DNA of 56,825 nt, counting the filler, from Sluysia triapertura (Eukaryota), in NCBI GenBank assembly GCA_046118255.1. It is 4 parts of 4 records of this genome, joined end to end, with 100 filler letters (N's around TTAATTAATTAA, not from the genome) between each part and the next. Parts side by side here need not be neighbours in the genome. Positions count along the whole stretch, not along the records: positions 29,641 to 45,048 come from JBJNIA010229123.1; 3 more parts are not named here. One strand, 5' to 3'. The notes beneath the pieces are model-generated. The model did no database searches, was not told where the DNA came from, and was given only the letters and a program-made list of their open reading frames with translations. This document shows positions 29,641-45,048 of this stretch, one piece after another. Position 1 is the first letter of the stretch. Every line of letters starts with the position of its first letter. Position numbers and translations under genes: made by a program.

Positions 29641-29985
29641 TCTTTAATCTGTTATTTTGATTTAGATCCAAATCGTGTATTTTATTTAATGCTTGATGTG
29701 TTAGAATGGCCCCTAGAATATACACAGATATTTATTGATTACCTTAAAACTAATAGACAAGATATATGCGCCCTAATTCGAAACAAATCAACTATAGATT
29801 GCCCACCTAAACTATTTTATAAATTAAATCGTATTTTTGTTATGAACAATCTAATAAAACTTAATAATATTTGTGAGTATTTACTACCAACTGAGCAAGA
29901 AACTAAGAGAAAGCTCAACAATATTTTAATTCTTTTAAAAGAACCCACTACACCCTTATGTAACCTCTTAATGGTAAAAAATTAA
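29641..29985 (+). pseudogene. THOC2: THO complex subunit 2 N-terminal region fragment
   Basis: SLICYFDLDPNRVFYLMLDVLE...PPKLFYKL...NLIKLNNICEYLLP matches THOC2 [22 protein letters not shown]...TPSSLY...NLIDLDDLYVHLLP. It is cut by the gap on the 5' side and abuts the family A tract on the 3' side. It could instead be a true exon. Confidence 0.72.
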
Positions 29986-29989
29986 AAGC

Positions 29990-30575
29990 AAGTGTAATTT
30001 TAAATGTTACTTGATATTTTTAAGTGAAGTAATGCTTTTGTCTGAAGATAAGCTTAAGTAATGAAAAGTTATGATTTACTTCTTTCGAAATAACATTGAT
30101 GTTTGAAGTGGATTGTAAATGTATACTGGTGTTTGAATGAAAAAAATGTTTAGTTGTTAGGATTTAATGATAAAAGATTGTGAATTTATAATGTTTGGAT
30201 TGCTTTGAAAATGTCTGTTGATTAATTTCGAATGTGATTGTGATTGAACTGTTAAGAAATGAAGAATAAAATGTTTTAGATGAATTTTTAAATGTAATTT
30301 AATGTTTTTGAATGTACTTGTGGTTTGAATGTTATGAGATTGTGGGTTTAATTGATTTTAACGGGTGAAGATGTTTTGGTGGATGTAAAAGAGATAAATA
30401 TGGGAATGTTAAAATGTTTAAGAGTGTGGTTTTATGTACAATGTGTTAATTTAGTTTAATGCTGTTTTCTGTTGATTCTTGAATGTGATTTGTAGATTTT
30501 GAGAATGATTATTAGGTTATCGAAAGTTTATGTAATTTTTATAAAACTCATTAGGGAAATAGGTTGGCCACCACA
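29990..30575 (-). mobile_element. Family A terminal tract copy
   Basis: Ends AGGTTGGCCACCACA and aligns in reverse with 16468-17100 (for example tttggattgctttgaa vs ttcaaagcaatccaaa). Confidence 0.65.
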
Positions 30576-31089
30576 AATTCGATCACCTAAATTCAAGTCA
30601 AAGCAGTAGTTCGTCTGGCGTTCAATCCAATCAAATCCCAAACCAGGTCCAGAAATCCCGGTATGAAACCTTCGGCTTTTCGTTTTCCAATACTCCTCCA
30701 GTTCAAAAATCCATGATTAAATGTACTCTGCGCATTCGTGATGGACGCATTGGCAGAACAGTGGGAAGTTCCAAATTACTCAGAACGAAAACCCACGTGC
30801 CTCAGCCCGAACCTCTACCTAAACTGGCCACAGCACGATATCTGGGAAATACAACCAGGATTTCAAAACACACAAATAGGTCTTAAATCATCTAAAGTGT
30901 AAATAATAAATCTTAAAGAAAAATAATATGTATATTAATAAATAAATAATAATCGTAAGAAAAATTCAGTAATTTTGTAAATTTTTGTAAATTTATTTAA
31001 TAAAAGTAATAATAATTGTAAAAAATATAATAAATTAATCTTTATGTAAAAATGAATATTTATATTTAAATTATAAACCATAATAAATT

Positions 31090-31245
31090 AATCGTCATTA
31101 AATAAAACGGATGTACATTAAATTGGAATATTTATATTATAATTTATAAATAATTATTTTGTTTATAATCAAAATCGTCATTAAATAGAACGGATGTACA
31201 TTAAATTAGAATATTTATATTATAATTTATGAATAATTATTTTAT
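31090..31245. repeat. About 83-bp tandem duplication
   Basis: aatcgtcattaaata.aacggatgtacattaaatt.gaatatttatattataatttat occurs twice. Confidence 0.85.
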
Positions 31246-31425
31246 TTAATAACGAAAAAGGATATTGTGATTGTTTATTAAAAACTAAACGGATATTTGT
31301 ATTACCAAAGTGTACAACGAGAAAAAGATATATAAAGGTTTGAAAAAATATTAATAACGATAATAAGAATTTTTAGACTTATTTTAACGCACAATTATTA
31401 GTTGTTGAAAAATTTTAGTCAATAA

Positions 31426-31584
31426 TTCGATTTTGGTAAAGATATTTCAATTTTGGTAAAGATATTTCAATTTTGGTAAAGATATTTCGATTTTGGTAAA
31501 GATATTTCGATTTTGGTAAAGATATTCCGATTTGGTAAAGATATTTCGATTTTGGTAAAGATATTCCGATTTGGTAAAGATATT
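31426..31584. repeat. 19-20 bp minisatellite (TCGATTTTGGTAAAGATATT) x8
   Basis: Head-to-tail units with no spacers. Confidence 0.92.
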
Positions 31585-32639
31585 GGTGAAACAAATTATT
31601 CGGTTACACGACTCGATCTACTCAATTTCGGATACTCTAATATTCAAACAAAGATTACGTAAGCTATTTAGTTATAAGATTTATGACCCTATTCTTCACG
31701 GTCTTAATATCTGACGTAAAATCTAAATAGACATTTTTTAATAGGACACCCACAAGTACTTTCTGGGTTAAAATCTTACTTAAATTTGTAATATATATAT
31801 TATTATTATCATTAAATTGCTCATATTATTTAAAATTTTTATTGTTCCTAAAATTTTATTGTTGTTTTATACCTTTTTATATTTAATAATAAAAATTCCC
31901 ACACTCAGTGTTTTGTTGTATTATTGAATAAGAAATTTGTAAAATTTAGCTGAGAGAAAAATAATAATTGTGATAAACTTAGACATTAAATAAAAGTTTT
32001 TATTTTTAAAAGATTAGAAGTCAATTAAAGAAAGTTAAAGAATTTTTTGAATTTGTTAATAGTTGTAAAAATATAAAAGATTTAAAAAAGGAGTAAAGAT
32101 ATTTAAGTACTAATAAGGATATAGTTTAGAATTAATTATTTTCTTTTGAATACATTATCAGACTAAAATATTAGATAAAAGTTTAACCTCAAAAAATACA
32201 AAAACATTCTAACATCAGAGCATACAGTACTGACCCTCTTTAATTCATTTGACAAAGCTTTAAAATCCTACGCAAACGTCCATTATAGGTAAACAGTTTA
32301 GCGTAGGCGGACCCAAAATATAAATTTAATATTTTTTATAATTGTTCGAAGAGTTAAGGAAAACCGAACACAACTTATACAATATTATAACCAACAATTA
32401 TATAATGACAAATGGATAATCAGAGCAACAATAATTTATCGTCACACTACTAAGCAAAATTGAAACAAATGAAATATCAAATACTAAAAATTTTTGAATA
32501 TATTTTAAATTAAATTATCCCCTCGCATACGCACGAGGGCAAAACATTTAGTTCAGAAAATTTTACGGGCCGAAAACAAAAAATATATATGTATTTCATT
32601 TTTTATTTGTTTTATTGCACAAACTGATTAAAAAAAGTA

Positions 32640-33375
32640 CAAAAATTTAATATTGTTTCGACGAACACTAACTAATTTCATAATGTCAAGTCTTATGTTT
32701 TGAGATAATGATGTTCTTAATGTTAACCTTGATCTATGTGACGATTTATTGATTTTTAGCAAAGAAAAAAGCTGCTCGCACAAATAAGTACATCCGAACG
32801 TCCTATAAATTTTTGAAGCAAACAGTCCATTTCATTAAAGTTTTCAGGAAAATACGAATAAAACTCGGGTACCTACTTCGTTATATTTTTCTTGTAGTGC
32901 CGCATTGCATTGAATTTCTACCAACTCTATGTGCACTTTGCTTCTTGCTTTTTCAGCATTATACGAAAATGGGGCATTGAACAACAAAGAATCTTTTTCA
33001 CACGCTTGAAAGCTGTGAAATCTTATTTCAATTTGTAACAACAGATCGTCAAAATATGAAGTATATTTGACAAAATTACAATTAATATTCCATTCTTTAT
33101 AACCTTTACAAGCGGGAAAATGAACTAAATCACAATTTTTTAGTTGTTTTTTCCAAATTGCGAGTTCCAATTGAAATGCCTTAATAAACTCTCACATTTG
33201 TGTGACAGCTATATTTAGACTCTAAAGTTTTAAATTTAACTCATTTAAATGCCGCGTAATATCGGTTATAAAACTTAACTCCTGCATCCAATTTTTATCT
33301 TTAAATTATTCAACTGACTGATCTTTCATTTCTAAGAACGTTTTGATTTCATTACGAAGTTCCCAGAACCGCATC
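32640..33375 (-). mobile_element. Degenerate hAT transposase C-terminal half (Buster/SPIN/GTF2IRD2-like)
   Basis: RFWELRNEIKTFL...FITDITRHLNELNLKL...HFPAC...IELVEIQC...FGCTYLCEQLFSLLKINKSSHRSRLT, including the hAT dimerisation motif, with stops and frameshifts. Confidence 0.88.
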
Positions 33376-33654
33376 ATTTTTTTGTTGCTGTGGTCATTAA
33401 TTTTAAATCAAACTGCCAGCGGTTGACAGTTAATTAAACAAAGTAGTATCAATAGTATTTACTGATAGCTGGTTATCGTTATTACTAACTCTGTGCTTCC
33501 ATTGGTTGTCCAACCAGAATTAACATTGCTATCTTGTCTCACTTTCTGATTGAACGATTGATTTTCATTAGAGAGCTATTTTTAGAATTATTTTATTATT
33601 TAGACAACATTTTGTAAAAATTTTTATAGATTTAGATTATTATATTTTGAACAG

Positions 33655-34515
33655 GTGTTGAAAATAAAAATAAAACTACAATAGTAACTGATGAAATCAT
33701 TGATATAGTTCAAGAAGAATGTAATAGATTAAATAATTCTACCGTTGTTAAGAGGCGCAGTGTTATAGATGGATTATTAAGAGAAATTTTCGAATTTATT
33801 GAGCAAGAATGGGCAAAATTACGGCAAATCAGTGATCTAAAACCTTTTATAGAAAAAGTTTGTTTTCTTAAATTTTATATTGAATATAATGATGTTGAAA
33901 TTAAAAGCAATAATAAATTATATCGTAGTTGTGTAAAATTATTAAATCATGCTGTAAAACGTCCAGATATGTTTAGTTGGACTCATTTACAACACAATTT
34001 TTGCGTGGAAGATGAAACTGCATTAACAAATATTCTTTACATGGGTGATGAGCATGATGTAAAATTTTTTGATGAATTTTTAAATAATTACGATGGTAAA
34101 TTGCACGGAAATTTTCCTTTTAATTTTGATGAAAGATTATTTAGTGTTGTAATCTTAATGATAACCATGATTGGAAAAAATTATTAAATTGTAAAGTATT
34201 AGATCGAAATACTACTGAATGTCCAACTATAATATATAAAACTGTTGCAGAGGTATTTGGTCATGAACATGATTATGGCAAATTAATAAATCGTTATTTA
34301 GATACTTTTAGTTCAAATGAACACGTTGCAGACAAAGTGACACCGAATTTTGATAATGAGTCAGAAATGACGAAGTTAGATGTAAAATTTAAAGATAACA
34401 TAAAAGTATCGAATACCGTAGTAAGTAGTAAAACATTAGGGCACAGTCGTGATGAAATAACCCATAGATTCCGATCATTACTCTATCGTCGCCGTTTTAA
34501 GTACGTATCCATGCA
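33655..34515 (+). pseudogene. EZH2: Enhancer of zeste (EZH1/2) N-terminal half, frameshifted, no CXC/SET domain
   Basis: Open frame from 33657 (..IEQEWAKLR..VKLLNHAVKRPDMFSWTHLQHNFCVEDETALTNILYMGDE..NYDGKLHG). A shifted frame follows with a SANT1-like segment, TPNFD and THRFRSLLYRRRFKY (compare SLHSFHTLFCRRCFKY). Confidence 0.85.
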
Positions 34516-34599
34516 GAACACCGTGTTCAATGTATAATAAGCCATCCTATTGTCATACAGTTATAGTTATCAATGAATGTTGTATAAACCACAAAGAGA

Positions 34600-35075
34600 C
34601 AAAAATATCAAATAAACAAATGATTGAAGCTTGCGAATTATTAGATGCAATTCAAGAATTATCGATGAAAGTCGGACTGGATCAGGAAATTAGTAATAGA
34701 GAAATGAAGTTAAATTCTACAATTCCTTTTCGTACAAGCCTCAAAAATTAGATTTAGAATCTCAAACTTTTACTCTGATAAAGTTGCACAAACAGCTAGA
34801 CTTCATCTTTGATCTTGATGTTTTTACAACCAGAATTCAAATGATTCCATCAGTGTTGTACACAACAAAAATGGACAACAATCTTCAATCTTATGATTAA
34901 GTCCGGTTTATGTCTATGCGGTACGATCCAAAGTGGAAAGTGTTCAAGATTCGGCAGCACTTGTTTGTATTCACATGATGCGTGCGAATCGTAGATATTT
35001 TTGGTTGGACGTCAGACTTGATAAATCATCATCGTAGAATCCACGAATTGATATTATCTTTGACGATACTTCGGC
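34600..35075 (+). pseudogene. Disrupted family A ORF with C-x9-C-x6-C-x3-H finger
   Basis: QMIEACELLDAI..., KLDLESQTFTLIKL...DLD, KSGLCLCGTIQSGKCSRFGSTCLYSHDACE and FGWTSDLINHHRRIHELILSLT all align in order to 25093-25739. Confidence 0.65.
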
Positions 35076-35593
35076 TTACAATGCACCAAACATGCTTTTT
35101 TATTCTTCTATTGTTATTATTATTACTATAACTATTTATTTATATCCTTTATTTTTCTTTAGGAGTTCAAAAAGTCTATTAATGAGACATAATCAGGAAA
35201 TAATCGACGCAGAACAAAATTTAAGTTTACATGTTAATTTTTGTCTTTGTTTTATGTATTATAAAATAAAATTAAAAATAAAATATTAAAAATAAATGAT
35301 ACTAAAAAATTAGTATATAAATATCAAAGTAATTTAAAATTAAAATTTATAAATATTAATTCACAGCTGGTTTTGCAGAATTATGCAAGTCTACATTAGT
35401 GTTAACTGGTGTTGTTAAGAAAAATCAAACAATGAATACCAAATCAATGGTAGAGTTAATGTCTCAATGTAATGTGAACCACAACCACCGAGATTTTTCA
35501 GATTACCCCTTGTCATGTTTTCCAATTTTAGATAGAGCCCCTGCTATTCATTTTGAAAGATTTAAATTTCTGACAGTAGTGAAGTACCTATAG

Positions 35594-35828
35594 CAGTGAT
35601 TCCCAAAGTGGTCTATATCGAGCCCCAGGAGTCGCTCTATGGAGCGAGTGAGACGCATATAAAATGCTCCGAGATCAAATAAAAGCAGTTTTCGACCGAC
35701 GATATTAATTATATTAATAATATTATATTTTTATAATTTTTTTGCAATTTTTGAAATTTCTTGCCACTGACCCCCAATTTTTCTCACTTGCAGGTTTTCA
35801 TCGACATATACCACTTTGGGAATCACTG
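35594..35828. mobile_element. hAT-type MITE
   Basis: Perfect 18-bp TIR CAGTGATTCCCAAAGTGG / CCACTTTGGGAATCACTG. The 8-bp TSD is not preserved. Confidence 0.75.
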
Positions 35829-36899
35829 ATCCAGAATTAAAACTTCCGTCGTATATTTGTTGATAAGACAGTTAAATGTGTTCAACAGGAAAGTTTCAAT
35901 GGTTTGTTTTAGTAATTATTTCATTTACTGTCTACCATCGGTTTGTCGAGAATATAAAGGAAAAATTAAAGTTGAATTTATTTTTACATACTTTTGATGC
36001 GAGTTTAACGAATTAGATCAAATACATTTGTAGTATTTTTATTGTGACAACAGAAAATAAGGATTAATTATAACAAATTAAGTTTTTAAATTATACTTAA
36101 TAGAGATCGAATAAAATATATTTGGACAGAAGACAATAACAATAATTACAACATTGTATCGAAATCACACGTTTAAGAAATATATGTTAAAAACTTTAAA
36201 AATTTTAAAAACTATATAAATCTTTATTTACATTCTTCGTATATCGCTAAATGTGACGTTGAAATCAATCTACCCTGGTTTATATTATTTTTGATTGGAA
36301 CATTAACTTATTTTAATAACAAAACACGTTACTATAATTTTTCTAAATTTAGTATCACATTTTAAAATGTTACCAAATTAAAAAGTAATTGTAAGAAAAA
36401 AAACTACAAAAATAAAAATTCAATAGTGAAATGGAATAATAAAGTTAATTTATTTTAAATGAACTTCAATTATAAACAATTGAACAGTGTGCATTATTAA
36501 GAATTGTATAGAAAAAATTTAGCTTATTTGAATTAATATTTTTATTGTTTTGCAACAAGTAGTTATACGTATATATTTTAGGTAATGACAATAATTAAAA
36601 ATTTTAATAAATTTATCTATTAAATTTTTATGTATATAATGTCATGAATTTGTTGAAAAATACTATTTATATGTTTCAATATGAATGTTTTTAAGGTACT
36701 TATTTAAATCATATGATTACAATTAGTTCAAGGAATCATATCAATAAGGGGTTATGTAACCATCACAACATTTATTCAGCGATTTATTAAGTATTTTAGA
36801 ATTAATAAAACTATTATAGATAAGATTTAAATTTTTATTAAAGAGAATAAAATTGTTAAAAACTTCTGGTTTAGTTATTGCAAAATTTTTATACCTTAA

Positions 36900-38632
36900 T
36901 TTATTTAATAATAAATACATTTAAAGGAAAAATAACTAAAATAAGATCTAAGGCATATATTATAAACTAAATTTATTGATTTAATAAAAATTTTCTTCAT
37001 AAAATGAAATTCAAATGATAGCAAATGTTGATGCCGCATTGAAAATATTACGATCCGTACGCTAAAATGGTATTCAGACATATAAGGACACAATGAATAA
37101 AAAATGATAGTAATGAAATAATAAATACAAAAGACAAAGATATACCTTAAACGAGTAGACTCGTGGCGAATATGACGTATAACTGAGTTAGGCATAAACA
37201 TATTTGAACCAATTTAATGCGAGTGGTAGGTGATTGAAAAATCCACTGTTTGAAGGAATTTACTGGAAAGGATTGCATTATATAATAAATGGTGAGTTAT
37301 GTTATTGAACTAAATTATAATTACATGTATCGGCTGAACTGATATAATTGATGAAATAGTTTCATTAAATATATTGTTAAGATCCAATGTTAGAAAATCT
37401 GGAGAAGTTAGATAAGTATGTTAGTTTTTGGTTCAATATTCAGTGCAGAAGATGCTTTTCTAAATATCATATAACTAATAAAATCGTCATCATTTGCTTT
37501 CTAAGCATTGGTTTTACAGTTATTACATTGTTCTTGATCTACATTATGTCCACATTTATTTGTTTGAAATGATTTATATTCACTTTGATGTTTTTTAACT
37601 ACGATATCTTTTAATACATTAGTTCTTCGAGAAATATTATCAAAATCTTTTCTTAATTCAATGAAATCAGTGGAACAATTCTTTAAATCATGAGAAATGG
37701 CTTTATAGCTACTACTGGATACTTCATTGATTTATTATTCATGATATTTAATCGATCGAGTATATGACTAATGCTTTGTTCGATTTTATAAATGAATTCT
37801 GACATTAGTTTTTTTGTTAATCTAATTTTATCATTGGTTTTTAAGCTACTAATTTTTAATTTACTGTACGTATATGATGATTCCCAAAATTTTGTAGTAA
37901 TAATAGTTTTCTGATAGTTTTTGTGTACAAAATTTTTAAAAGTGATTATTATTGTGGCATACAAATTGTGATCAATTTTTATTGGCCAATCAAAGCAACT
38001 TCTTGTTGTTGCACCACTTTAATTAAAATTTTTGGTGTACAGTCAGAGTATCAGTGAATGATACACTGACTAATTATAAGATGTCATTTGTTGACAGAAA
38101 AAAATTTTAAATAATGACAAACTGTCCAGACTGACAGTTAAAATAAATGTTAATAATATATTAATAATTAATAATGATAATAATAAAATGTAATAATGTA
38201 AATAATAATAATAATAAAATAAAATAACAATGGCAATAATAATAAAATAAAATAAAAATGACATAAATTTCTTTCTAAATATTATTTCTTAATATAACAA
38301 TAATAATAATTATGAAATAGAAATAAAAATTCATAAATTCATATCTTTTTCTTTACTTTTCCTTTAGATAATTTTCTTTTATTCTTGAAGTTCAAGAAGG
38401 AGATGTAAAGGTTAAGTGAGAATGTAACGAAGATTGTGAAGAAGTATAAAAGGAGAGTAACAATGTAGTTAAAAGTGTTAAAAGAAATTTCAATTAGTTT
38501 ACTGCTTTAAACTAGATTTAAAATGCAAATTTAATTATTTTTGATGTTATGAATGTTTTAAGTGTTGTAAAAATGTGATTTTTAGTGTAAAGTAATGAAT
38601 TAAAATTTTGAATGATAAAGTTGGCTACCACA
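36900..38632 (-). mobile_element. Family A element copy 3 with degenerate unknown ORF
   Basis: Terminus TGTGGTAGCCAAC at 38632, then a tract, an agaaagaaatttatgt block and ctgtca/tgacag hairpins at about 38040-38140. Long but disrupted frames follow at about 37200-37980. Confidence 0.5.
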
Positions 38633-41099
38633 CCATCAAATGTACGTTCAGAATTTGATTCAGAATTTAGTGATATTTACAATATTTTAAAATTTGAAGC
38701 TAACATTAATATAAGACAATAACAGATGCTTGACAAGGTCACCAAATTAGGAATTATAATGACACTAGCTTACATAATGTTGACTCACATAACAGTTTTA
38801 ATGGTGGAAGTTCTGCATTCTTTTATAATATTGTATAAAAGCACATGTTTACTTTTTATCAATAAAGTTGTCGCATGATTTTCTCGAAGTTCAGGGATGA
38901 TAACTTGTATATAAATATTAATAACCTTCACTTTTAGATGCATGACAGTTTTCACAGTAAAAATGCATTCAATATTATTGTCATTCATTTCATGAATGAT
39001 AATTAAATGGGTCTAATGCATAAATTTACTAGTTATCGTTGCCATAATAAAAATCACAATTGTTCACAAATAATTTTAGTATTTTAAAAGAAATGTTCAG
39101 AATTTTCAAAAAAACGTCCGAAACAGGATGGTCTGCCAATCATAACCAGGATGAAATTTAATCATTACTTGGTTGTCATTAACAACAAAATTTTTATGCA
39201 GTGAAAATAATGCAATAACTTTCAATAATAAATATTTTACATTTATTGATTTTCTTTTACATTCTTATCTAGCATTTCACGTGGAACTAAAATTAAAGTA
39301 AAAAACCGACAATCATAAATGAAACAATTAAATCAATGAGTTCACCTGTGGCTAGTACGCTAGATTTTAGAGGTCAATTATAAAACTTTATAAATTTTGA
39401 GTGTGTTTGAATGAAATATTAATCTCTGGCAAGAGTTTAAACTTCTTTAATGTTGTTTTCACTTTATATTATTACTTATATTTATCTGGAGGTACAATCT
39501 TTCATTAATGTAAATTTCCTCTATTTACTAATTCTGCAAGTAAAATCTATACTTTGTCTATTACGTTTACCTTATCTGAAAGTGTGAATTCGAATACTCG
39601 TCACAGTTATTCGAGATACAAGTGTGCAATAAAAGTTCTAAAGTTTATTAATTTGAATTCTTGTATATGCTTTAATATTATTGGAAGATACTTTATTTTC
39701 TTCTATTAAACTCGATTTGTCTGATATTAATTCAACTTTAAACTCTTCAGTGCACTTTATAAGAATTTTTAAAACGTTTTTTTCTTTCTTAGTTTTAACT
39801 TAACTTTATAGTATATATCTAATTTTTAACTCTATTAAATTTTATTTTAAGCTATTAAATTCTTTTATAAAAGTACTTAATTCCACCCTATGTCTCTACT
39901 TTCAATCTTCTCTTTTCCTTTATTATAAAGAATAAAAACATACGATTATTTATTAAACGAACTATAGAATAATGAAATTAATATAATTAATGTTATAAAA
40001 ATTTATTTTTATTTTAGTTAAAATTAGATTATACATAAAAAATTAATTTTATTTTACTTTAGACTGGAAATAATTTTCACCTGTTGTATACAATTAGATT
40101 TCAATATCTCCAGGATTGTTGTCGTTGTGAAAATGTCTCAGTGTTTTCTCAAAATTAACAGTATCGTTATTACGAATCAGCAATAATTTCAGAGTTCTTA
40201 GCGTAGTTGTTACGAATTGACAATATTTCAGAGTTATTTGTGTTGTTATAAATTAGCAATAACCTCAAAATTATCAGCGTCGTTTTTTTTACCTTGAAAT
40301 TAGTATTTACATATATTTTACTACGCAGCTGTTACTACAAAATTATATAATAATTATTTCCAGTCAACATTATTAATCTAGAATTACCGTATAATAATAT
40401 ATCACAAAATTATTTACTAAATTATATCAACATTAAATTCACAAAATAGTCACAAAATTATATGTAATTCACTTATAATAATCACGAAATAGTTGTTTAT
40501 AAATAAAAATTATAATAATTATTGATAAAAATTAATTCCAATCAATATTATTTTATCGTAATCTTTAATTTAAGCCAATTTTGTTCGATAATAATGTTAA
40601 TTTTTAATTACATACTAGTTCTATTCAATCTCAATTTAATGTAATTTTATCGTACATATAATATAATATAATGCTCTTAAAGTTTGATATTATATTATTG
40701 TTATTGATTCTTATTTTAAAATAATTCCATTAACTATAATAGTGAGGTTTGATGTTTATAAATTTTAATTTCATATTGTCTTTATTGAATCTTACTCTAA
40801 AATGATTATTTAAACAATTTCAATTTAAATTAGATTGCTATTTGTTATTAAATTTTGAATTTATATTAACTGTATGTAATTTCATTTTAAATTGATACAT
40901 TATAATCTGAGTAATTATTTTGAGTATTATTTTTAAAAATTATTTTAACATTGTTTTATGATTATTTTAGAATTAAAATACATATGAATGATAATTATTT
41001 TAATATTATTCTTATAAAAATGATTATTATTTTTAAAATATGGACATTATTTTACAAAATGAGTATTGCAAAATATTACAGATTGGCTATAAAGGTATT

Positions 41100-41800
41100 A
41101 TGAAATGAACTCATTTAATGCTCTGAAGATTATCGTATATACATGTTACTCAGGCTATGATTCGTTAAAACTTTGCTTCCGAAAATTTTATTTTTCATTG
41201 ACTTTAAGTCATTATTTAGTTTACGAGATTATTTAAAATCTCTTCAAATTTTCTTGTAACTTTGACAATGAAGTACTATATTCCCCATGAAGCATGATTC
41301 CACATGTAATTGATCGGTTGTCTTTCATTCAAATTAATTCATCACTCACACATAATCATAAGGTTATTATGTCTCAATGAAATTTTTTATTATTTCTAAA
41401 AGATTTCAGGACTTCTGTAATCTAAGCATTTGTAAATTATTGTCATTATTTTGAATACTATTCTTGTTTTTATTGGAAACTAATATAATTCCTTAAGATA
41501 AGGTGTTACGTGAGATCTTCGTTCCACTTGGAAAATTAGTCTTGCTGCTTGATTAATTATTAATTGTAATTTTTCACTTTTCTACGTGAAATTGAGTACA
41601 ACAAACCATTGTCAAAATCTATGTTGCTAGTTATCAATGAATGAACAATAAGTTTAGCTATTTCTTCATTAATAAATTTTAGAATACGCAATATTTTATT
41701 TACACTTTTTGACAAAACAATTAAAATTTTTGAATCCATATAACAACCTATATTTCGTACTTTTTTTCGTACTTCGCATCTAGTGTCGTGCCACCTATAA
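41100..41800 (-). mobile_element. Non-LTR retrotransposon (L2/CR1/Crack-like) ORF2 3' remnant
   Basis: VRNIGCYMDS...KLIVHSLITSNIDFDNGLL...HVTPYLKELY*FPIKTRIVFKIMTIIYKCL resembles LVHALI.SRLDYCNSLL...HITP.LK.LHWLPI..RI.FKI. Confidence 0.75.
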
Positions 41801-41994
41801 TTAACTTTGTTTCATTTATTTTGGTATTGTCGCTATTTTTATCACTGAAGATTATAAATGACTTTTCCTCACTGATTTCCAAGAATATATTTCCAAACCA
41901 TTTTATCAATTGAGATACTGATTCTTTTGTTCTTTAAATAGGTTTTTCTATGTTTTTCATTTCATTATTATTTTATTCTTATATTTACTGCTGC

Positions 41995-42041
<47 letters not shown>

Positions 42042-42426
42042 TAATATTATTATCATTATTATATCATTTCCACTGTTACTATTATTGTGTTAGTTTTTTA
42101 TTTTTAATTTATAAAATCTATACTTGACAATTAAAATATCAACCAATACTTAGTATTGATAATTAAAATCAATTTCGGTATTATTTTAGTGCTAATCACA
42201 CTATCGAGTATTCCATTTTTATATGCAAGTATTTTCAAAAAGACAGTTATGATCAAGAATTTCGTAAGTGTCCCATAAAATTAAACTAAATCACAATGAA
42301 TATTAACATAATGATAGGTAAATATTCTTATTTAATTCATAATATATTTGAATTCCAATTTATGCAAATAAATTACAGAAAGAAATCGTACTTGTGCATT
42401 AGAAACATAAAGTTGCTTTATTTAAA

Positions 42427-42562
42427 NNNNNNNNNNNNNNNNNNNNNNNNNNNNNNNNNNNNNNNNNNNNNNNNNNNNNNNNNNNNNNNNNNNNNNNNNN
42501 NNNNNNNNNNNNNNNNNNNNNNNNNNNNNNNNNNNNNNNNNNNNNNNNNNNNNNNNNNNNNN
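42427..42562. other. Scaffold gap
   Basis: Plain N run. Confidence 0.95.
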
Positions 42563-43330
42563 GAGAATGTGACCGAATAAACGTATTAGAATTGTATTCC
42601 GTAATTCTGACAATTGATTGGTTGGCACTATTAGTTTGATATAATTTTTCTGAAATCGCTCGACTTCTCATCAAACACCGACCATTTTCTTTGTCAATCC
42701 ATAATCGCCGAAGAAAAATATACTCTCTATTAATTATAATTATAAGTTTAATAAAGGTATTGATTTGTATATCATTGTAAGAGTTTCGTTTAAATAAAGG
42801 TTATCGAATTAAGCAAAAATTAAATAAATTATTTCCTTTATCGTTTTTATTCGTTTCTCACTCAACAAAATATTAACATATTTTATGTACCACAAAATAG
42901 TATTAAACCTTTCCAGTTCACCTTTCCTTAGAATATTGAACCGAAATAAACTACTAATGTGGATAACTATAAAATACTTCTTCATAAAGGTAATATCAAA
43001 CGTACAACTCCGAATTTCTTTTTAATTATGCTTACATTATGCTTTCACTTTCTACATTAATTTATCGTCTAACATAGGTATTTATATCAGATTAGGGAGG
43101 CGTTTGTGGAGCGCGTGATGTATGTTGTATAAGAGTTGTAATAAGAATGGAGTTTGTAGATAATTTGAATCAATCAACAAACAAATTCACATTAAAATGC
43201 ATATCTAAAACAGGTGATTCCTAAATGGATAAGCCAGTGACATTGTCTTACATATGAAACGACAAGGAGTTTAGGAGAGTGTGCCTTTTTACGAATTTAA
43301 GCCTGCTCTAAGGAGTATTCTTTTGTTCTT
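42563..43330 (-). mobile_element. Highly degenerate LINE reverse-transcriptase remnant
   Basis: NLFVD*FKL (like LFADD), VERFQKNYIKLI and IRLFGHIL occur in the expected order. Confidence 0.45.
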
Positions 43331-44881
43331 AACGATATTGTAAAATAGCATTGTTGTTAATAATAATAATAGCAATAACAATACTAAGTCTTAAATATTG
43401 TTTATATTTCATATTAAATAAAAACAATTTAGTCTGCAATTAAATATCTACAAATTCATTTATTAATTAATTTAACTTATCAAATTGAATGTATAACTTA
43501 AACAATAGAGTTTGGATGTAGTCAATACTTTAAATTATCAGTCTTAAAATGGGGCATTGTTTACAATGAAATTTACATAAAATCAATAATTTATACCTAT
43601 TTCTAATTTTCTGAAAATCAATTAAAAGAAAAGATTATATTAGTAAAGTAAATCATATATTTATATAAAGTTGTGATAAAATGTTATTAAAATAAAATTA
43701 ACATCTAATGAGTTAACCCTGTTATCTAAAGTTCGATATTTTTGCAAAGTTAGGTTATAAATATTCTATGTGAATATACTATTTATTGACGGACAAATGG
43801 ACCGATTTAGTATCAATGCAACTTAAATTATAAAATGTCAGCTATTTAAATAAATGTGACTCAATATTAATTGTACAACAAATACCTTTAACTCGAACAG
43901 CAATTGAATATCTTCGATGAATAACTTCTTCAATAAATAATCGAATACCAAAATGATATTCGAATCGATACTTGTAACCAAATTAAATACTTGAAACCAA
44001 ATCTATTCCTTGTAAGAATGTGTTGATAAAACCCATCTATTTATATTTGATTTTTCCATAATAATGACATTTTCCAATTTTTATAGTACAGTAATATATA
44101 GTAAAATTACTTTTTTGATATTATTTCATTTACACTATAGTTTGTTATTATTTTATAGTATATATGTTATTATTTTTCTTTCTTACTTTTAATTACTTTT
44201 ATTTTATTCACTTTGTTGTTTACTATTATGTATGTTATTACTTTTTGACTTAATTTTTAATTTAATTTATCTTAATTTTTACATTTTTAGCATTTTTGTA
44301 AAAGAACTTTTCATTTTGAAAATATAAACAAATCTTAATTTTAATATTGCATGTATAAAATTAACATTTAATTACAGAGATTTGATAAACATTGTTAATA
44401 TCTAGATCATCTTTAGAGTTACTTTAGCTTTCTTGTTGAAGAAAAAATTAAATTACACAACTTCAAAATTTGTCAAAAAATTTTATGTAAATAATAAATT
44501 TGTAACCCTTTATACTAAATTTAAAATTTTATTAATCGATAATCTTTTTTGATTAAATTTAAACTTTCAGAAATCAATCTCGTTAATCTTAGCGGAACAC
44601 TAATCAAAAGTTATCCAAAGACATTTTTTCGTTATCCTCCAGTTATTCCAATTTACTTTCGACGCTGACATCTATGCATCGGCCCTTCAATGTGTAAGTC
44701 CGGTGTCATAGAGAACTCACGAGTGTAAACACAGAGAAGTAAAAAATAAAAAATTAAAAGTTTTAATTATTTTAATTTTCCAAAACTCATTCTCACAAAT
44801 ATAATAATCATAATAAATATAATACTGAAAATAAAATTGAAATATTATTTAAATAATACACAAAAACGATATTAACCAAAC

Positions 44882-45048
44882 CTTTTCGACAAAGGATATG
44901 GATATTCGGCAATCCAATGGACAACATCTGTTTTTGTTTTTGATTCTGTTTCTAAGACATCAATCTCACTGACATTATCATCCCATATTACTCTATATTT
45001 AGAATCAACTTGACATTCGATAAATGATTTAGCTGAGACATCATTGTA
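44882..45048 (-). CDS. STARD7: START-domain lipid-transfer protein exon (STARD7/PCTP-like)
   Basis: YNDVSAKSFIECQVDSKYRVIWDDNVSEIDVLETESKTKTDVVHWIAEYPYPLSKR vs STARD7 YTDVTPRQFFNVQLDTEYRKKWD..V.....E......EVLHW...FPYPMYSR. AG|GT donor at 44881. Cut by the gap and absent from the ORF track. Confidence 0.8.

Follow-up and report, generated by a model that had tools for sequence, protein, structure and literature searches.

An intron-free, SET-less EZH fragment in Sluysia triapertura, probably a decayed partial retrocopy

Results and Discussion

Features of the locus

The window was a stretch of 56,825 nucleotides from the Sluysia triapertura assembly GCA_046118255.1, made of four parts joined by filler, and all features described here lie in the piece from record JBJNIA010229123.1 (29641–45048; Table 1). 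This piece was strongly AT-rich, with a GC content of about 0.23–0.30 and a background of 0.23 at 35100–41000. It held a fragment related to E(z)/EZH, for which all best protein matches came from Platyhelminthes. The THOC2-like exon at the left edge was aligned with residues 198–293 of human THOC2 (PDB 7znk_B, E 0.0034) and with Pfam THOC2_N (E 0.035). Its 3' end was a consensus donor (ATG/GTAAAA, with the slash at the exon end), and the ten plus-strand ORFs examined downstream contained no other THOC2 exon. Rfam and tRNA scans of 29641–45048 gave no matches.

Table 1. Coordinates of the features in the piece, counted along the window
Feature	Position	Strand	Evidence or remark
THOC2 (THO complex subunit 2) homolog exon	29641–29975	+	Incomplete at the left edge
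Decayed transposase, presumably hAT-type (FAM200/GTF2IRD2-like), C-terminal half	32631–33440	-	Translation with in-frame stops
TGA where the EZH start codon is expected	33648–33650	+	Alignment to the N-termini of Schmidtea EZH and L002
EZH segment 1, open frame of 178 codons	33651–34184	+	phmmer, tblastn, profile HMM
Frameshift	34134–34153	+	Lack of ~7 nt compared with residues 162–170 of Schmidtea EZH
EZH segment 2, SANT1L and MCSS start (residues 171–289), shifted frame without stop	34154–34504	+	tblastn, profile HMM
MCSS remnant	34478–34510	+	FRSLLYRRRFKYVS where Schmidtea has FRSLICRRCFKYDC
Downstream stretch beyond the EZH homology	34505–35100	+	ORF translations, many stops between open stretches
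MITE-like palindrome, 235 bp, 28-nt inverted ends (CAGTGATTCCCAAAGTGG...)	35594–35828		Fold z -6.4
Two overlapping open stretches	41563–41933	-	No Pfam match
Open stretch cut by the right edge	44875–45048	-	Weak START-domain match (Pfam E 0.0028)

Extent of the EZH homology

The fragment at 33678–34504 on the plus strand was collinear with EZH residues ~12–289, a span that begins with the SBD/EED-binding region, includes SANT1L and ends where the MCSS starts. In a phmmer search against PDB chains, the translation of 33654–34184 matched human EZH1/EZH2 structures with an E value of 2.5e-16, query residues 43–154 being aligned with residues 50–162 of EZH1. An exhaustive HMMER search covering 1.84 billion representatives returned the EZH of Schmidtea mediterranea (AFD29605.1, P0001; 777 residues) as the best match of the fragment, with an E value of 4e-35. 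With tblastn, residues 12–161 of this protein were placed at 33684–34133 with 44% identity and residues 171–289 at 34154–34504, in another frame, with 42% identity; both blocks together had a joint E value of 8e-57. A profile HMM was built from nine full-length EZHs and run on the six frames of 29641–45048, with stops written as X. Across these frames it matched 33678–34142 (model positions 10–177, iE 5e-32) and 34196–34504 (236–317, iE 1e-12) and nothing else. Pfam gave a weak Ezh2_MCSS match alone on the EZH pieces (E 0.093), so the homology is demonstrated by phmmer, tblastn and the custom profile. The E(z)/EZH homology is genuine and far above chance. The ~870 bp of E(z) sequence, from the EED-binding helix through SANT1 and the MCSS region, that the earlier note had described was confirmed.

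Segment 1 corresponded to EZH residues ~2–167 and comprised the SBD, EED-binding helix, BAM, SAL and SRM, its frame running past the frameshift to end in ...GKNY-stop. The N-terminal EED-binding/SAL/SRM region was present, with 18 of 22 near-universal columns kept. Collinearity over residues 12–289 was shared with Schmidtea EZH (AFD29605.1) and with the triclad EZH locus L002, and the flatworm-specific motifs HGNFPF, DYGKLI.RYL and VTPN.DNE were common to the copy and the planarian EZHs.

The EED-binding helix (33771–33830) of the copy reads 'EQEWAKLR', which is vertebrate-like; human EZH1 has 'NEEWKKLR'. The EW of this helix was absent from the EZHs of Schmidtea, L002 and the other flatworms examined, and the copy thus retains an ancestral feature lost from the planarian enzymes.

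CXC and SET were absent from both strands of the 15.4-kb piece in the six-frame profile HMM search and in tblastn with full-length EZHs, in agreement with the previous description of the fragment as SET-less. The span free of both domains comprised 10.5 kb downstream and 4 kb upstream of the fragment, and the same full-length tblastn and profile HMM searches gave no homology past residue 289. Judged by its sequence, the copy is an EZH-derived fragment that stands functionally outside the EZH enzyme family, as SET and CXC are lacking and the MCSS cysteines are replaced.

A continuation of EZH past 34504 by way of a second frameshift at FKY/YPC was considered, which would do away with the junction described in the earlier note. 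BLASTP gave an E value of 0.31 for it. The reading through 34506–34748 was collinear with the Schmidtea linker, with a shuffle P of only 0.05–0.07, and continuation was not demonstrated; it gave no alignment with 11 other EZHs and no profile HMM match.

Lesions in the copy

The EZH homology extended to one or two codons from the EZH start, where a TGA was found in place of the start codon. No ATG was present anywhere in 33400–33690, and the first in-frame ATG, at 33969, was the equivalent of Met106 in Schmidtea EZH. An AG at 33652–33653 lay directly before the open frame as a putative acceptor; used in this way, it would not continue the frame of the THOC2-like exon that opens the piece. The earlier note had named this AG as an acceptor and counted 179 open codons: the dinucleotide and the open stretch are there, but the acceptor role was without support and the length is 178 codons.

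One change of frame separates the two segments, as had been noted before. It was located neither at an intron position nor in a long homopolymer. An assembly error could account for it instead of a true lesion. The loss of MCSS cysteines was likewise confirmed. The motif C-x-x-C-x-K-Y-D-C was absent, CRRCFKYDC of Schmidtea being replaced by YRRRFKYVS in the copy, which has thereby lost the aspartate together with three cysteines (C to Y, C to R, D to V, C to S). Provable EZH homology stops at this remnant. The intact frame with a start codon that an EZH1-beta-like decoy calls for was not found, given the TGA at 33648, the ATG-free interval and the frameshift. The locus as assembled is not an intact gene.

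Comparison with flatworm EZH introns

Intron positions were taken from two flatworm EZH loci, L001 and L002, both from species other than the host. L002 is a Logan contig with a triclad EZH, the product of which was 73–93% identical to Schmidtea EZH. It had an intron of 70 nt after residue 100 (TAT/GTAAGA...CCAG/ATC) and a second one after residue 179 (AAG/GTGGGT). L001 is a more distant flatworm EZH locus with 42% GC and introns at about residue 176, within 230–262 (~240) and after ~322. The copy was continuous across every L001 and L002 intron position inside it (after residues 100, ~179 and ~240), in line with the claim that it is intronless. The frameshift precedes the residue 179/180 junction by 27 nt or more and is therefore not a splice remnant. 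The lack of introns at these proxy positions supports an origin from spliced RNA.

An intron near residues 176–179 was common to both flatworm loci. As it is present in two distant flatworm EZH genes, it is probably ancestral. The GC3 of L002 (1–1065) was ~0.6, compared with 0.13–0.22 in the copy, which places closely related EZH proteins in genomes of very different base composition.

Divergence and coding history

Conservation was scored on 26 real EZH N-terminal regions, in which 37 columns were at least 90% conserved. The copy kept 26 of these near-universal columns and had changed 11, three MCSS cysteines among them. Two universal prolines were altered (WAPLQ to WTHLQ and NIPYMG to NILYMG). 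Over both segments, no stop codon was found in 288 codons. When neutral, AT-biased substitution was roughly simulated, an absence of stops after this much change proved unlikely: about 11 of 37 changes required ~0.15 substitutions per site, and 0.07% of the runs stayed stop-free over 288 codons; without the six motif columns that had been used to pick sequences, the figures were ~7–8 changes and ~0.5% of the runs. The copy retained a strong compositional pattern by codon position: GC at positions 1/2/3 was 0.41/0.24/0.13 for segment 1 and 0.41/0.31/0.22 for segment 2, with a uniform background of 0.23.

For alignment and tree building, the two EZH segments were joined with X at the frameshift and the two L002 exon translations were placed end to end. 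In the maximum-likelihood tree, the copy was sister to the planarian EZHs (Schmidtea, L002 and an ENA fragment) with support of 100/99. Its end branch was 1.89, compared with 0.07–0.32 for the planarian EZHs. Strong divergence with an open frame is consistent with a SET-less paralog that was coding for a time and was disabled recently, and the copy probably stayed protein-coding for long before it broke. Two points weaken this reading. Should the host be only deeply related to planarians, its normal EZH would account for part, and perhaps much, of the long branch, and the coding-like composition of a young copy would come from its parent.

Origin of the copy

We consider the locus to be a partial, decayed EZH retrocopy that was once a coding N-terminal paralog and is now a startless, frameshifted pseudogene, with a probability of roughly 65%. 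A spliced EZH transcript would have been reverse-transcribed and inserted, giving an incomplete copy, free of introns and derived from an EZH gene of the planarian type, that covers the N-terminal PRC2-assembly region (residues ~2–289). The SANT2L-CXC-SET part, the 3' two-thirds, would have been lost by rearrangement or never have been present. The copy would then probably have been kept for some time as a coding SET-less EZH N-terminal paralog, and its disabling would be recent, unless it remains in use by way of an upstream exon. Several observations count against a retrocopy. Classic LINE-made copies keep the 3' end and poly(A), but the EZH copy kept the 5' end instead. No poly(A) was found after 34504, where the DNA near 35250–35350 was merely generally A/T-rich, and flanking direct repeats or a target-site duplication were not found beyond chance AT-rich matches. 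Intron loss was also judged against the EZH genes of two other flatworms and not against the host parent.

A stronger version of the retrocopy reading appears unlikely to us: a retro-derived gene for the EED/SUZ12-binding front part of EZH, long kept in a planarian-lineage flatworm and tuning PRC2 assembly, as a free-standing genomic equivalent of EZH1-beta in mammals. The locus may in this case be the gene itself, which would begin in an upstream exon and whose frameshift would be an assembly error or very recent, or else a freshly dead remnant.

It is similarly doubtful that the fragment is a live exon, either of a functional SET-less EZH-N paralog or of the host's own, very divergent EZH with distant downstream exons. 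An upstream exon joined at the AG of 33652–33653 would then supply the start, and faulty assembly would explain the frameshift. The stop-free 288 codons in spite of strong divergence, the coding-like composition with GC3 below background, the retained N-terminal residues (18 of 22) and the plausible pyrimidine-rich acceptor just before the frame all agree with a live exon. However, about 7 nt are missing at a frameshift outside any long homopolymer, no candidate upstream ATG exon was present within 250 bp, and universal prolines as well as zinc-ligand cysteines of the MCSS were altered. The 10.5 kb downstream held no CXC or SET, and the protein libraries searched gave no matching protein.

Host gene fragments that DNA transposons have captured (Pack-MULE, Helitron, hAT transduplication) sit between element ends, usually with introns. 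The earlier note had proposed a capture of this kind, in which the N-terminal half of EZH was taken up by a DNA element that carried a hairpin module as well as a zinc-finger ORF, the locus being its 'filled' state. We regard this as unlikely. As with captured fragments, the host gene fragment lies beside transposon remnants. The remnant upstream, which we take to be a hAT transposase of the FAM200/GTF2IRD2 kind, partly by motif recognition, had Atlas leads of 0.91–0.92 and no Pfam match, and it ends ~210 bp before the copy. The MITE-like palindrome, presumably hAT/Charlie-like by its ends, also favours an element, as do a CCCH-like motif at 34845–34991 and the 3' truncation of the copy, which is unusual for a plain retrocopy. 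The hAT-like remnant is, however, on the opposite strand and itself truncated. The palindrome was the sole strong hairpin near the copy and lies 1.1 kb downstream as a separate feature; its end motif occurred within the piece only at 35594 and 35828, and no matching 8-bp target-site duplication was seen at it. No inverted or direct repeats bracketing the EZH fragment were present in the piece, and unlike captured fragments the copy was intron-free. The hairpin module said to lie just upstream could not be recovered, since 33400–33660 folded no better than shuffled sequences (z 0.33). The zinc-finger ORF downstream fared no better. The CCCH-like motif was confined to a stretch of 49 codons with stops around it, its match to zf-CCCH_UNK (E 0.0028, 18 bits) fell below the Pfam cut-off of 31, and its cysteine spacing differed from that of CXC. 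The orphan open stretch at 34461–34748, in the place of the element's supposed own ORF, had no relatives in a word search or in the Atlas. The piece thus gives no support for capture by a mobile element, and the hAT-like remnant beside the copy reflects a transposon-rich neighbourhood, not capture. What stands of the proposal is a decayed, SET-less and intronless copy of the PRC2-assembly part.

Least probable of all is a DNA-level segmental duplicate of an intron-poor host EZH gene, later shortened by rearrangement without reverse transcription: a broken DNA duplicate would fit the complete 5' end and the absent 3' end, poly(A) and target-site duplications better than a LINE-made retrocopy does, but all three known intron positions are empty in the copy, including the one at 176–179 that two distant flatworm EZH genes share and that is probably ancestral.

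Relation to known systems

Compared with planarian EZHs, the decayed retrocopy that we favour is set apart by an identity of 42–44%, a very long branch and the lack of introns. It is without SANT2L/CXC/SET and a start codon, bears one frameshift and has altered MCSS cysteines and universal prolines. As in processed pseudogenes and retrogenes (PMC5408686), a multi-exon gene would have been copied without introns into transposon-rich DNA; unlike these, the copy has no 3' end, poly(A) or target-site duplications and kept its 5' end. It also differs from dead-on-arrival pseudogenes in its apparent signs of a long coding history.

By analogy, the SET-less N-terminal product of EZH that comes nearest in function is EZH1-beta. 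In the summary of Bodega et al. 2017 given in PMC11612306, this short cytoplasmic SET-less EZH1 isoform of mammals modulates the shuttling of EED to the nucleus and the assembly of PRC2-EZH1. EZH1-beta resembles the copy in being an EZH N-terminal part without SET and with the EED-binding region kept, and its control of nuclear EED is the kind of decoy role that had been proposed for the fragment. EZH1-beta is an alternative transcript of the normal gene with a proven protein, whereas the copy is a separate genomic locus, startless and frameshifted.

Should the locus be no more than a decayed partial retrocopy, it would count as ordinary genome debris with local annotation value, and the EZH fragment is worth flagging in annotation lest it be taken for an EZH gene. 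If the signal of a coding history is real, flatworms may possess a separately evolved EZH protein that lacks SET and competes for EED and SUZ12. Such a protein would be a natural, genetically separable PRC2 modulator in animals whose stem cells depend on chromatin regulators. We see a modest chance that the copy is or formerly was a SET-less PRC2 modulator.

Other features of the piece

Upstream of the transposase remnant, a tandem duplication of 83 bp was located at 31090–31255 and a tandem array of ~9 copies of a 20-bp unit (TTTTGGTAAAGATATTTCGA-like) at 31402–31592. A GC-richer island at 30540–30900, with a GC skew of 0.5 immediately before it, contained open stretches of 107 and 61 codons, neither of them matched in Pfam, and may represent a further transposon fragment. 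On the minus strand, the translation of 41563–41933 resembles what we assume to be the region just past the reverse-transcriptase domain of a non-LTR (LINE) element. The open stretch at the right edge may be an exon of a lipid-transfer gene.
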